NCBI GenBank assembly: GCA_024704765.1
Contig: JAKMXF010000298.1
Location: 1-64,000, forward strand
Origin: Oopsacas minuta
Taxonomy: Eukaryota > Animalia > Porifera
DNA length: 64,000 nt
Reading direction: 5' to 3'
Part shown: in pieces, positions 39,389 to 49,293 of the stretch
Position numbering within the stretch: position 1 is the stretch's first letter
Layout: each line of letters begins with the position of its first letter
Notes under the pieces: model-generated
The model's database searches: none
The model's input: the letters and a program-made list of their open reading frames with translations, nothing else
What the model was told of the DNA's origin: nothing
Program-made: the position numbers and the translations under genes

Positions 39389-42300
39389 TTACAATAGCCC
39401 TGCCTCTTTAACCATATCGTAGAATGGTCCCCTTTTGTTAATGAGATTGTTAGGTGTGTCATGTTCGATAGATTTACCGAAAGATAGCACCACTACTTGA
39501 TCGTAGTCTAGAATTGTTTTGAGACGATGAGCAATGGTAATAACTGTACAATCAGTGAAATGCTCTCGTATAGTCTTTTGTATGATATCATCTGTCTCCA
39601 TATCTATGGCAGCAGTAGCTTCATCCAACACAAGAATTTTTGTACGTCTCAGTAGAGCTCTGGCTAAACACACCATCTGTCTCTGTCCTACACTTAAGTT
39701 CTCTCCTCCCTCTTGAATTATAAAGTCCAGTCCTTTGGGCATACCCTCAACATGGTGTTTGAGATGAGAGTGCTCCAGGGCCTCCCAAAGACCTGCATCC
39801 GATACTTTATCTAAAAGAAATACAAAATAATGTCTAATAGACTCTAATTCTACTGCTTGGTAGAGATAATTTTAAATATAAGTTTTTGGTGAAATTGTGC
39901 TTATTAGGGTGATTGTTACAATCATTTGGGCTTAGAGAATGGATGTAGATTAGACCAGAGAGTGCCAAAGAATAACACAGGGTCCTGATACCCACATGGA
40001 AGAGACTAGAAGTGCATATTCCTCGAATACAATGAATAGTATCAAAGCCACAATCATAGTAAAGATCTCAATGAGAGGAGACACAAATTATAGAACATAA
40101 GCATTTAAGGAAATACGTTACCCTATTTTGGCTCAAATATACACATGCTGAGAACTCACCAAAAGGATCTAGATTAGACCTGAGAGTACCAGAGAATAAC
40201 ACAGGGTCTTGAGGAATAATAGTCAGTCGAGATCTCAAGTCATCTAGTCCCACATCAGCAATATTAACTCCATCTATTACAATACTCCCACCAGTAGCCT
40301 CAAGGATTCTGAACAGTGCTAGAGTCATGGAAGATTTACCAGCTCCAGTTCTCCCTACAATAGCTAGCTTCTGACCTCCTCGTATCTCCAGATCTAGATG
40401 GTCTATCACTAGATCTAGATCCTCTCTGAATTTAACACTGTACTGATTGAATTGTACATTTCCGTGTTGTGGCCAGTTAGCTGGTAGATTGATCTTATCA
40501 GTTACAGGAGAAGCTTCTCTTTTCAACTCAGCATACTCTTTTACTCTCTCTACCGAAACGATGTTAGCCTCCAGCTCAGATGTCATTCTTACCAACCAAT
40601 TTAAAACTTGCGTAATGCTCAGAGCATAGCTGATAGATAACCCAATCAAGCCTGCATTTGTTATGTGTAATTCCCTTGACACAACGGCAAACAATGCAGC
40701 GAAGAAAACAACAAAATGACCCACAAATTCCAGCCTTATAGCTAACCATCTATTAGCACAAATACTGGGATAATACACTTCCTGGTTGCGATCTACTCTA
40801 TCCTCACTCTCCTGTATAAAGCTAGCCTGTTTCTTATAAGCACGAATGGTACTAACACCAGTGAGAGACTCTTGGAAATGTGAATAGATTGGAGATCTGG
40901 TAACAGATTCTATTCGTTTCAGCTGTCTGGATGAGCATACATAGAATCTTTGTACGAACAGATAGAAGATTATCATTGGTATAACCACTATTAGAAACAA
41001 GGGGGTAGCGTAGGAGATTATTATTATTGTCATTAAAACCGAGAAAAAAGTTGCTAGGAAACTTCTAATTGATCGTGGAATAGTTTCGTCAATTAAATAA
41101 ATGTCTTTAGAAAACCGATTAACAATCCTACCAATTGGAGTTTTATCAAAGAATGACATTGGAAGACGGACGACATTAAGCAAGAGAAGTCTGTGAAGAT
41201 CTCGTGAAGCATAAATAGCACCAATAGCAAAGAAATAAGCAGAAGCTAACGTAAATATACCCTGTATGAATCCGAGCAGAGCATATACACCTAAATATAA
41301 TACCAATTCAGGATCAGCTGTATTATTCGTGTTATTACTAGAGTTAGGAGTAAGAGTATTTTTATTGCTCCAATAAGCTAGCCAAACAGATGTACCTCCA
41401 CTGGCTACATAAGTCAGTATATAAAACGCCATGATAAAGCAAGAGAGAATTACTCCGATTGATTTTATATACACATAGACAACCTTCATGTTAACGCGAC
41501 CTGTGTCTGCTTTCTCCTCATCTATGATATTGCCATCCTTAGGAGCAGCAGGATGTTTGTCTACAGAACTTTCCTGCTTTTTGAATTCTTTCGGGTTAAG
41601 TATCTCTTTAGGAGATAAAGGTTCCACAACTTCTTCATCCTTTGTTTCAGAAACACGGCCAGTGTTTCCAGTTGTAGCAAAGGTCTCAATCAACTGAGCT
41701 ATATCTCCATTATTCCTCAGCACTGCATTATACTCACCTTGTTCTACTATTGTACCGTGATCAAACATTGCAATGTAATCACTATCTGATACATAGTTCA
41801 GGTTATGAGTCACGAATATTCTGGTTTTATTCTTCAACAAACCGTTAGGACCGATAACTTCCTGATAGATATGGTGACCTACGTGAGCATCAACAGCTGA
41901 CAAGGTATCATCCAAGAAATAAACGTCAGAATCTTGATAGACTGCTCTAGCCAAACTAACTCTCTGTTTCTGTCCTCCACTCAAATTAATGCCTTTCTCT
42001 CCAATCTCTGTTTTATCTCCTGTGGGTAGGATTAGGATGTCGGTTTCTAAAGCACAAGCTCTCAACACGTCCTGATAACGATGAGGATCTTCACGAGCAC
42101 CAAACAGAATATTGTTTTTCAATGTCTCATTTTGCATCCATGGTATTTGAGGTACATACGCAACAGAACCTTGTAGTTTAACTTCTCCTCTATGCTTATC
42201 CATTTCACCCAATAATGCCATTAAGAATGAGCTCTTGCCAGTACCTACCTGTCCTATGATAGATACAAGAGTCCCTGGATCAATTCTAATGTTAATATTC

Positions 42301-44348
42301 TTTAGGATCGAGTCACCAGCTTTTACCCATCCAAAGTTAGCATTTTGCACTAGAATAGCTGGTTCCCCCAAAATAGCAGGATTTCTGCTCCATTTCACAC
42401 TGTTAGGATCCAGATCTTCATGATTCAAGAACTTGTTCATCCTCGTGATTGAAACGCTGCATTCAACAAGAAAAGTCACCAAGAACGGTAGCATGCTCAT
42501 TGGGAATCTTAAAATATTAAAAAGCGATAAAGATACGAAAGCAATTTGAGGGGTGAGAGACTTTCCAGCTACTACCCAAGTAGCAAAGGAAGCTAGAGCA
42601 ACTAACAGTGGAGCCATCATCCAAGTGAAACTTGAAACAGCAGATAGAATAGCAGCATATTTCAAAACTATCATTTCTTGCTCACGAATATCCAGGACTT
42701 CCTTCTGGTTAGGAACTTCCCAGGCGTATAACTTGATGACTTTAATACCGTTAAGCACCTCAGTAATGGTTTTGATACGTTTATCTTTTAGTTCCATTAA
42801 TCTCTTTTGAAATTTACGATTTATTGTAGCAATCACACTATTTATAGGAATCAACATTATCATCACTATCAAACCGGCAAATGCAGCATACTGTATGACA
42901 AAATATAAGAAGATAACAGATACAACTATTTGAAAAGGAGCAGACCAAATCACATGAATATAAGCCATCAAATCCATGAACCTTTGAGCATCTACTGACA
43001 TAAGATTAACAATCTCACCTATGGTAGTCTTTTGACGAGATTCATGACTCAGTTTCAATGCCTTCCTATAGATAATGTTAACTAGAGCTGTACGAATGTT
43101 CATACCGAGGACAAAGCCCTTCTGGAAGTACTGATGAAGGAGAATTGACTGCAGTATAGACACAGATAATAATATGAAAGCGTATACGATACCATACCAA
43201 TAAGGTTCATTCACATTCTGTACAAACATAATCAAGAGACTGAGGATCTGAGGACTCACGAATATTAAACTGTCATGTATCAATTTGAATAATCCACAAA
43301 TAAGGAAAGGGAACCAATACGTCTTGACCATGATTAGGAGAGAATGAACAAAGAGAGGGTTAACAGGAGTATCAGAGCTCTTACTGCCTTTAGAACGACT
43401 AGATTGTATAAGAGGATCCTTTTCAGTGGACATTTTAATGGTATTCATCAATAATTCTTCATTTGGTACAACTGGTGGCCTTCTAGCAAACTTTGCTAAT
43501 TTCTTTTGATATTCCTTCTCCCAGGTGTTACGGAATAAAGGTGCAGCGTATGCTGTCGTGTCCTCCCGATTGAGAGACCAGAGATCAGATCTCTCTAACG
43601 TCCTCCTAAATCCTGTGATTACTAACCCATTCAACCACCACCAAGTTATCTGAGAGAGGAATGTGGCTTTCTCCTCGGGGATTGGTTTATCGATTCCTTT
43701 GAACCAACTTATTGGTATTTTATCAGGAAATAATGTTATGATCAACAAGATGCTTCGAATAACCAAATTTAAAACAGTGAATGTTAGGAACACAATACTG
43801 GTGATAGAATTCTTTGGTTGAGTTAATTCATTACCCTCAATATCCAACGAGTAGGTTCGTATTTTCATTCCATCATGAAACACTAATAGAAACCAGAATA
43901 CATGGAAGAGACCAGAAGTGAATATTCCTCGAATACGGTGGAATTGAACAAGTATCAAAGCCACAAACAAAGAAAATAACACAATGAGAGGAGATACGAT
44001 TTGGAAGATGGCTACAGAGTTTGTGTCTACAGAGTTTTTGTCTACAAGATACATATAGATTGCGAATATTGCTTCTGCTGTAACCACAAGGATATCTAGA
44101 CCTATGAACAATTCCTTCAACAGATTCACTAAGGTTAGTGGGATACGAAATTTAGAATAACGATAGTATAGCACATGAGAGAGAGCTGTGAAGCAGAAGA
44201 GGATGCTAATTACCGCGAGGAGTATAGTGTCTTGAAAACAGAGTGTTAGATCTATTTCATCATAACCGCGATCTGGATTATCTAGCCCACCCCAGAACCT
44301 AGATACAGGCTGGCAGTATGAGTCAAGAAATGTAGAGTTTGAAGACAT
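39389..44348 (-). CDS. ABCC1: MRP1/ABCC1-like long ABCC transporter, complete copy A (1536 aa); exons 44348-40160 and 39810-39389
   Basis: TMD0-L0-TMD1-NBD1 ([17 protein letters not shown])-TMD2-NBD2 (GRTGAGKSS). A 349-bp phase-1 intron (g|gtgagt...ttttag|at) leads to the terminal exon with LSVGQRQ and LVLDEATA. Confidence 0.95.
39941..40084 (-). pseudogene. Intronic fossil of a third ABCC giant exon (TMD0 fragment fused to NBD2 fragment)
   Basis: 39941-39988 matches 40165-40212 at 43/48 nt ([16 protein letters not shown] vs [16 protein letters not shown]). 39994-40084 matches 43900-43997 (35/37 nt at one end; [16 protein letters not shown] vs [16 protein letters not shown]). Confidence 0.88.
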
Positions 44349-49047: not shown

Positions 49048-49293
49048 AATGACAAACTTACCTTGAAAATAAAATGTGATCAAATAACAAATCAAGCCAG
49101 ATATTCGTCTCTATGTATCAAATATCAGTTTTATACTATTCAGTATACCAAAATAGATACTTACATAACGTGACAAATATCATTTAGAACATTCTAATAA
49201 TAGCATTGTATCAAGTTGTATCAGCACTATTATAATTCGGGTAATAATCATAGAGTTAGAAAAAGCAAATAATAATCACTGAGCTGCCTAGAG

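Follow-up and report, generated by a model that had tools for sequence, protein, structure and literature searches.

The window analysed here, a stretch of 64,000 nucleotides (nt) from the glass sponge Oopsacas minuta (contig JAKMXF010000298.1, positions 1 to 64,000), carries an ABCC transporter locus in which two giant first exons, A and B, lie in tandem upstream of a single terminal exon, all on the minus strand (Table 1). Exon A ends in ...LRSNLDPF followed by one G (last base 40160) and a gtgagt donor (gt at 40159-40158), and the acceptor tttcttttag| stands directly before 39810, so that the frame is restored in the terminal exon (coding part, 39810-39392), where G and AT form a D codon followed by KVSD. 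Joined in this way, the two exons encode in one frame a complete second nucleotide-binding domain (NBD2; ...NLDPF-D-KVSD...LSVGQRQ...IAHRL), with Walker A, signature, Walker B and H-loop. Pfam comparisons placed TMD0_ABC, two ABC_membrane and two ABC_tran domains in exon A, in the order TMD0 - TMD1 - NBD1 - TMD2 - NBD2 (TMD, transmembrane domain), and assigned positions 97-137 of the ABC_tran profile (PF00005) to the terminal exon, the earlier part of the profile being found in exon A. A hydropathy scan returned 17 candidate membrane helices, and the structures of MRP1, ABCC3 and ABCC2 match exon A at E = 0. The predicted product has the domain order of an ABCC1/MRP1-type 'long' ABC transporter and appears to belong to that type. 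The variable giant exon, of about 4.2 kb, makes up about 91% of the coding sequence, and the GenBank protein KAI6652537.1 (1536 amino acids) corresponds to exon A plus the terminal exon.

Exon B lies in the upstream copy of a 4.63-kb unit repeated in tandem (94.2% identity over 4341 nt; period, 4631-4632 nt), in which the homology extends from 68 nt before each ATG (44416 and 49047) to about 75 nt into the intron (40085 and 44717). These limits agree with the initial annotation of the locus, according to which the duplicated unit is the 4.19-kb exon with about 68 bp of upstream sequence and about 70 bp of intron rather than a whole gene, and exon B likewise ends in NLDPF and G, at 44792, with a gtgagt donor (gt at 44791-44790), so that both copies close in phase 1 as had been described. 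The differences between A and B form a mosaic of blocks with 99-100% identity alternating with blocks of 74-85%. Of 92 amino acid differences, 61 fall in residues 351-700 and none in the TMD0 helices; the differences cluster in TMD1 and TMD2. From 269 nt before the exon end to 30 nt into the intron the two copies are identical. No trace of a second terminal exon was found by tblastn or blastn in the 444-nt spacer between B and A, which supports the earlier statement that a single exon completes NBD2, and the third giant exon proposed to lie as a fossil in the intron of A was recovered as two pieces.

Table 1. Features of the ABCC locus in the Oopsacas minuta window
Feature	Position	Strand	Remarks
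Terminal exon	39389..39810	-	NBD2 second half (signature, Walker B, H-loop), 139 codons + stop; phase 1
Intron, exon A to terminal exon	39811..40159	-	opens with donor gtgagt; contains third-copy fossil
Fossil third giant exon, 3' end ...NLHPF	39938-39988	-	ruined donor ccattc|tctaagc
Fossil third giant exon, TMD0 piece	40038-40089	-	inside A intron
Giant first exon A	40160..44348	-	1396 codons: TMD0, TMD1, NBD1, TMD2, first half of NBD2; phase-1 end
5' flank of A, duplicated before B	44349..44416	-	two AG acceptors, 44404-44403 and 44383-44382
B donor, about 75 nt of duplicated intron and unique spacer	44417..44791	-	without terminal-exon remnant
TATA-like motif taagacctaATATATATACTGAC	44453..44475	-	about 105 nt before the ATG of A, outside the duplicated unit
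Giant first exon B	44792..48979	-	upstream variable exon, 93% amino acid identity to A; transcribed
1-bp deletion shifting the frame of B	46209..46214	-	NBD1–TMD2 linker, in a tract of about 850 nt otherwise identical to A
5' flank of B, identical to that of A	48980..49047	-	same two AG acceptors, 49035-49034 and 49014-49013
First-copy-type upstream flank of B	49048..49293	-	TATA-like agTATAAAA near 49135; caag|gtaagt at 49062/49061

A protein search revealed giant open reading frames (ORFs) of about 1400 amino acids with 60-82% identity, several per contig, on a few large ENA contigs, and seven of these contigs (L001-L007) were compared with the window. They are syntenic with it and have the same layout, which answers the call for a comparison of related species: a Bax-inhibitor-1 gene is followed by giant exons, one terminal exon, a cyclin-like gene and a radial-spoke gene in the eight genomes, with the reservation that the contig of L005 ends just past the terminal ORF and its downstream neighbours are not visible. 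Three giant exons are present in L001 and L007 (the middle one of L007 with a 1-bp deletion in a T run), at least three in L004 and in L006, which matches transcripts of Vazella pourtalesii at 100%, two in L002 and L003, one plus an upstream fossil in L005, and two plus the intron fossil in Oopsacas. When the terminal peptide was used as a tblastn query, exactly one true terminal exon was found per locus, always after the last giant exon, and the Oopsacas peptide is 85-94% identical in amino acids to that of each of the seven related loci. Searches for hidden terminal exons in all of the spacers (274-1838 nt) gave only chance-level matches (tblastn at E up to 10; blastn with 7-nt words). Seventeen of the 19 giant exons are open, the other two having a single 1-bp deletion each; each begins with its own ATG, without a constitutive coding exon upstream, and a phase-1 GTRAGT donor follows directly after NLDPF in all 19. 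Intron sequence beyond about 10 nt past the donor is not conserved. The donor reads G|GTGAGT in upstream copies and A|GTAAGT in the last copy, and all three donors of L004 are A|GTAAGT. In L001, L002, L003, L006 and L007 the upstream exons close with ...CCGTTT-G (or similar) and the last exon with ...CCCTTC-A.

Both A and B carry the upstream type of donor, while the TTC codon and TAAG letters of the Oopsacas fossil match the last-copy type of other species (cccttc A|GTAAGT). The original last exon of Oopsacas may therefore have died by internal deletion, and A would now splice across its remains. A first-copy-type exon with an internal deletion was also found in L005 (9004-9263), upstream of its single intact exon: codons ~3-48 are fused to codons ~1347-1388, and the end, TTT G|GTGAGTTAA, keeps the donor. 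This deleted copy parallels the fossil in the Oopsacas intron.

Pairwise identities sorted the giant exons into three classes: an old first-copy class (c1), a middle class present in three species (c2), and the last copy. No c1-class exon is present in the Oopsacas locus. Members of c1 show 62-65% amino acid identity to all other copies and 68-92% among the six species that have them. Ratios of nonsynonymous to synonymous substitution rates (dN/dS), estimated by the Nei-Gojobori method, are 0.055-0.12 for c1 orthologues (dS from 0.32 to 2.9 or saturated), 0.12-0.14 for c2 orthologues, and 0.095-0.145 for the last copy. By this measure the upstream exons are as constrained as the exon adjoining the terminal exon, and strong purifying selection acts on them. 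The middle exon of L007 has a T run that is 1 nt shorter (5915-5925; GAGATTTGAAC compared with GAGATTTTGAAC in L001), which shifts its frame, and its dN/dS relative to its c2 orthologues (0.12-0.14) is as low as that of intact copies; either the frame was lost very recently or the homopolymer was misread. Since exons that end in the middle of NBD2 have kept a donor, and have remained under purifying selection up to saturated dS, they would need the only available second half of NBD2. We infer from this argument that the upstream exons share the terminal exon, a splice that was not itself observed.

The classes do not diverge evenly along their length. Over the last 106 codons, c1 and the last copy share 97-100% nucleotide identity within each of six species, against 41-84% in the rest of the exons, and the same segment compared between species (orthologues) is only 78-84% identical; the within-species value of 97-100% applies to all copies. 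Trees of successive blocks group the copies by species in the N-terminal third (c2 and last copy), in NBD1 (also c1, in three species) and in the last 108 codons (all copies). Repeated localised gene conversion beside the shared donor thus homogenises the first half of NBD2, while the membrane domains and the linker diverge, so that the segment repeatedly homogenised, in a form of concerted evolution, is the one that must fold with the shared exon. The most variable block, residues 493-692, places B in the c2 clade and A in the last-copy clade, with weak support (60 and 55; joint node, 79), and for this reason the corresponding orthologies were not relied on.

Logan contigs of four runs from one Oopsacas sample (X1-X4) were aligned to positions 43200-49199. 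Runs X1-X3 are DNA-like, with even depth over exons, spacer and flank and with Nextera adapter ends in X1 and X2, and X4 is RNA-like, with exon depths of 5,000-25,000 falling to 172 in the bin 44400-44599 and to 302 in 49000-49199; this assignment fits the libraries listed in the genome paper, namely RNA-seq, DNA paired-end and Nextera mate-pair (PMC10280926). A 720-nt B-specific stretch was covered completely (100%) in three runs and to 93% in one. It is conceivable that A and B are alleles, or a collapsed or expanded repeat, set in tandem by the assembler, given their 94% identity with long tracts of 100% and the error-prone long reads used for the assembly (PMC10280926). Nevertheless, the unique spacer and both of the distinct 5' flanks are covered in all three DNA runs, the depth of B-specific words is about half of that of words shared by A and B in X1 and X2 (about two thirds in X3), and the same tandem layout recurs in seven other assemblies made by other methods. 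A mis-assembly, which the initial annotation had named as a possible refutation, is thus extremely improbable.

Copy B is not silent, as the initial annotation had left possible. B-specific contigs in X4 have depths of 680-1090, and the B letter at 45061 accounts for 1155 of 7722 counts, from which B is estimated to be transcribed at roughly 7-15% of the locus total. The X4 contig over the B intron and spacer (44391-44788) has a depth of 57, a depletion of about 15-20-fold relative to the B exon; RNA of the B exon loses the sequence past its donor, with a small amount of read-through towards A. Transcription of an upstream exon was also found in Vazella, where one gene has four chimeric Trinity isoforms made up of sequence from the last copy and from c2 of L006. 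Their c2-specific segments are 100% identical to c2 of L006 at places where the last copy is only 44-78% identical, and c2 is therefore transcribed. The join of the last copy to the terminal exon is present in a Vazella Trinity transcript (...NLDPF-N-TTPD), and that of A is modelled in KAI6652537.1.

The two AG acceptors in the flank common to A and B (gatttgAG|tatctg and gagtAG|cagatt, within 44382-44404 and 49013-49035) bear leader-like letters in X4. Loose ends reading GTAAGTTTTTT on the plus strand stand behind 44404 and behind 49014, that is, the same 11 non-genomic letters, AAAAAACTTAC in mRNA sense and then AG, are joined at two acceptors 21 nt apart. Trans-splicing has been reported in glass sponges (PMC10282587), and the 11 letters look like the 3' end of an Oopsacas spliced leader (SL). 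A search of the window for a leader gene with AAAAAACTTACAG, allowing up to 1 mismatch, gave no match. Further upstream, the flank of A and the last-copy flanks of other species have ATATATATACTGAC in common, about 105 nt before the ATG. The flank of B begins just downstream of a Bax-inhibitor-1 family ORF, which with its stop ends at 49294, and shows the order TATA-like box, AGGTAAGT, acceptor, which also precedes the first giant exon in L001, L002 and L003. Conserved TATA-like flanks thus stand before the first and the last copy, and none is evident before the middle copy c2. The leader-like letters at the two acceptors favour a role of SL addition in exon choice, and the distinct flanks of the first and last copies favour separate promoters, as judged from conserved motifs.

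The donor-like AGGTAAGT (GGTAATT in L003) is an observation in its own right. It is conserved in four species (window 49055-49066, L001:545, L002:5405, L003:5339), and the caag|gtaagt that had been noted before B only was verified at this place. The motif lies between the TATA-like box and the ATG of the first giant exon, and only 16-32 nt separate it from the ATG in L001-L003, which leaves no room for a cis intron upstream of the start codon. Candidate roles are a U1 site near the promoter, a branch-point region, or the donor of a very small leader exon whose splice would bypass the first copy.

A different product, a fusion in which the B donor is joined to an acceptor of A, was considered and rejected. 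Such a fusion is in frame only through ttttaatag, and only in Oopsacas, L001 and L003, and a join to either of the leader acceptors seen in RNA leads to an early stop. No joint of the B donor with an A acceptor appears among the contigs over 43200-49199, although a junction contig of 60 nt could be missed. The ttttaatag itself is conserved before each downstream ATG (window 44349-44369 and 48980-49000), where an in-frame join would give a read-through double pump; it is out of frame with the upstream donor in L002, L005, L006 and L007, and the in-frame position is probably a coincidence.

Completion of the upstream exons by the shared exon has to be weighed against several observations that count against it. 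A junction of an upstream exon with the terminal exon is present in no read or contig, the Oopsacas contigs having been examined over 43200-49199, upstream of the terminal exon; in this species short reads cannot in any case assign a junction between B and 39810, since the two exons do not differ in their final 269 nt. All four Vazella isoforms have the junction residue N of the last copy, not the D predicted for an upstream copy, and a query for junction fragments with the upstream-type D (P0003:1300-1531) yielded no glass-sponge fragment, the best match being 67% identical. A search of the protein collection for a c1-class transcript, with L001 c1 as the query, gave only genomic ORFs and the known Vazella cluster. 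Moreover, the SL acceptors before each downstream exon lie 300-700 nt past the upstream donor and should compete for it. As for B itself, the 1-bp deletion divides it in the assembly into two frames (48979-46193 and 46226-44754), it deviates from the other copies at 6 columns that are invariant in all of them (A at 2), and what the reads say about the deletion is only modest evidence, as set out below.

The missing junction is what would be expected if the upstream exons were never completed by the shared exon, being either inert partial duplicates kept alike by conversion from the last copy or stand-alone genes for pumps truncated in NBD2, and the gene conversion active at the locus could in principle keep their frames open. 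This is very unlikely. Conversion cannot maintain c1, whose nucleotide identity to other copies is only 41-84% along about 92% of the exon, yet c1 is open in six species with the low dN/dS given above at dS up to saturation; every copy keeps its donor although the intron soon behind it is not conserved; and the RNA of exon B exceeds that of the spacer past its donor by the factor of 15-20. Loss of the signature, Walker B and H-loop deprives NBD2 of an ABC pump of its catalytic site, which counts against truncated pumps. The claim of the initial annotation that the locus makes alternative transporters with a common last exon has thus gained strong comparative support, from six other genomes, from selection and from the donors, while the junction of B with 39810 on which it turned was not seen.

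The same annotation overlooked the deletion at 46214 (corresponding to 41583 in A; AAAGAATTCAAAAAG compared with AAAGAATT-AAAAAG), and B joined to the terminal exon gives a complete NBD2 frame only if the base missing there is present. All contigs over 46209-46214 in the four runs, which come from the same sponge, have the extra base of the A type (CTTTTTGAATT), and none has the deletion. The surrounding tract is otherwise identical to A, so that A-derived contigs also land on B, and Logan contigs retain one form of isolated A/B differences, apparently at random, with a choice that varies among runs at 45061, 43553 and 48184; owing to this random collapse, A-type contigs in four of four runs would arise by chance about once in 8 for the three DNA runs. 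The drop in depth expected from the frameshift, about 6% of the contig mean, is too small to be seen. The B letters at 46039, 46045 and 46214 occur in none of the contigs that cover these sites (from two to four runs per site), A-type letters standing in their stead, and all three are probably errors left over in the long-read consensus, in a tract beyond the reach of short-read polishing.

Two readings of the deletion follow. In one, the array functions in glass sponges generally, and B in Oopsacas is a dying pseudo-exon with a real deletion, still transcribed and perhaps also spliced, that yields no working pump. GenBank, like the window, breaks copy B, modelling it as two proteins (928 and 456 amino acids), and copies evidently die at this locus, as seen from the fossils in Oopsacas and L005 and the deletion in L007 c2; the low share of B in the RNA and its excess of changes at otherwise invariant columns, which is not significant and gives a slight hint of relaxed constraint, point the same way. 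Against this, the deletion is found in no contig of the four runs, the overall dN/dS between A and B is 0.24, and the deletion is the sole lesion in the 4.19 kb of B and lies in the A-identical tract, so that it would have to be very recent. The Oopsacas assembly was built from PacBio reads polished with Pilon (PMC10280926), a procedure that cannot polish such a tract well. On these grounds we regard a dying B as unlikely, and a consensus error, although not proven, as a good deal the more credible origin of the frameshift. B is probably intact and expressed at a low level, and its two GenBank proteins probably rest on that error. With the upstream exons spliced to the shared one, ORFs called separately in these sponge assemblies would have to be annotated as exons of one gene.

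The best explanation of the locus, which we hold to be likely, is that it encodes a glass-sponge ABCC1/MRP1-like efflux pump with alternative giant first exons and one constant last exon, that Oopsacas has its own version of this gene, and that the frameshift in B is most probably an error of the consensus. Under this model each mRNA would start at one giant exon, whose phase-1 donor would be spliced to the one terminal-exon acceptor, at 39810, and intervening giant exons would leave with the intron. Promoters of their own would serve the first and last copies, and leader addition would define the 5' end of each isoform; we infer from the features described both that upstream exons are completed by the shared one and that promoters and SL addition choose among exons. 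The isoforms would differ mainly in the membrane domains, on the substrate side, and have NBD2 in common, while gene conversion would hold the copies of a species alike in their last 106 codons and, for the most part, in NBD1. Copies would be born and die, Oopsacas keeping A as its main and B as its minor exon.

This organization resembles that of UGT1A, GCNT2 and the protocadherins, in which paralogous first exons stand in tandem, every one having a start codon and a 5' donor of its own, ahead of a single constant part needed by all isoforms. At the sponge locus, too, the giant exons have their own start codons and donors of the same phase, one constant exon lies downstream, and the upstream exons are under selection. 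As in UGT1A and the protocadherins, the variable part is the substrate- or ligand-facing domain and exons are born and die; as in UGT1A, the gene is one of xenobiotic defence. Gene conversion between neighbouring variable exons, as seen here, is known from the protocadherins, and the organization of UGT1 and GCNT2 has been described as vertebrate-specific (PMC1885805). The sponge locus differs from the vertebrate clusters in that it encodes an ABC pump, in that the variable exon holds nearly all of the coding sequence and is cut in the middle of a catalytic domain (NBD2), and in its small size, with only 1-3 (or a few more) variable exons, one constant exon of 0.42 kb and short spacers. It also belongs to a non-bilaterian with SL trans-splicing and has an acceptor before each downstream first exon, which vertebrate variable exons lack.

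Arrays of alternative exons are not new to this gene family. Metazoan MRP/ABCC1 genes are known to contain internal, mutually exclusive exons in tandem arrays, such as the 8 alternative exons of Drosophila MRP, and these arrays arose independently in several phyla (PMC6071210). They too diversify parts of the membrane domains by exon duplication while the rest of the pump is shared. In those arrays each unit is a small internal exon that has both an acceptor and a donor, and competing RNA structures select among the units, whereas the sponge unit is a first exon that has an ATG and encodes nearly the whole protein, so that the choice is likely to be made at the transcript start or by leader addition. 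An internal array of the insect MRP type was rejected for the sponge locus, where the units start with ATG and the upstream neighbour is a separate Bax-inhibitor-1 gene. Arrays of exons in the MRP family are therefore already known and arrays of first exons are not; the earlier remark that no such arrangement was known for ABC transporters is right only in part, the novelty being a first-exon unit that holds about 91% of the coding sequence. An ordinary tandem duplication of ABCC genes followed by partial deletion would share with the locus the head-to-tail array, the fossils and the conversion tracts, yet here only the last copy has a 3' exon in 8 of 8 genomes and the upstream copies are nevertheless under purifying selection.

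Somewhat more cautiously, but still on the favourable side, we suggest that the locus diversifies a pump in the manner of UGT1A and the protocadherins, with a cut in NBD2 that is re-matched by conversion and with a choice made by promoter and by SL trans-splicing, a leader acceptor being used or skipped within a 5-10 kb intron, and that it would be the first example of its kind among ABC transporters and among non-bilaterian animals. Should the upstream exons be completed by the shared one, a single locus would produce two or three pumps that have the same ATPase half but differ in the membrane domains facing the substrate, a compact route to diversity in chemical defence for animals that filter sea water and live with microbes, and the variable-first-exon design would extend beyond vertebrates and to ABC transporters. 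The locus would also serve as a natural experiment on which parts of an ABCC transporter must co-evolve, the halves of NBD2 being held together by concerted evolution, and it poses a splicing problem, as an upstream donor would have to skip leader acceptors only a few hundred bases downstream.

A longer order of genes, consisting of an SLC30-like cation-efflux gene, an LRR gene, the Bax-inhibitor-1 gene, the ABCC locus, and the cyclin-like and radial-spoke genes (window 37019-53000), is kept in the eight genomes despite saturated synonymous divergence.

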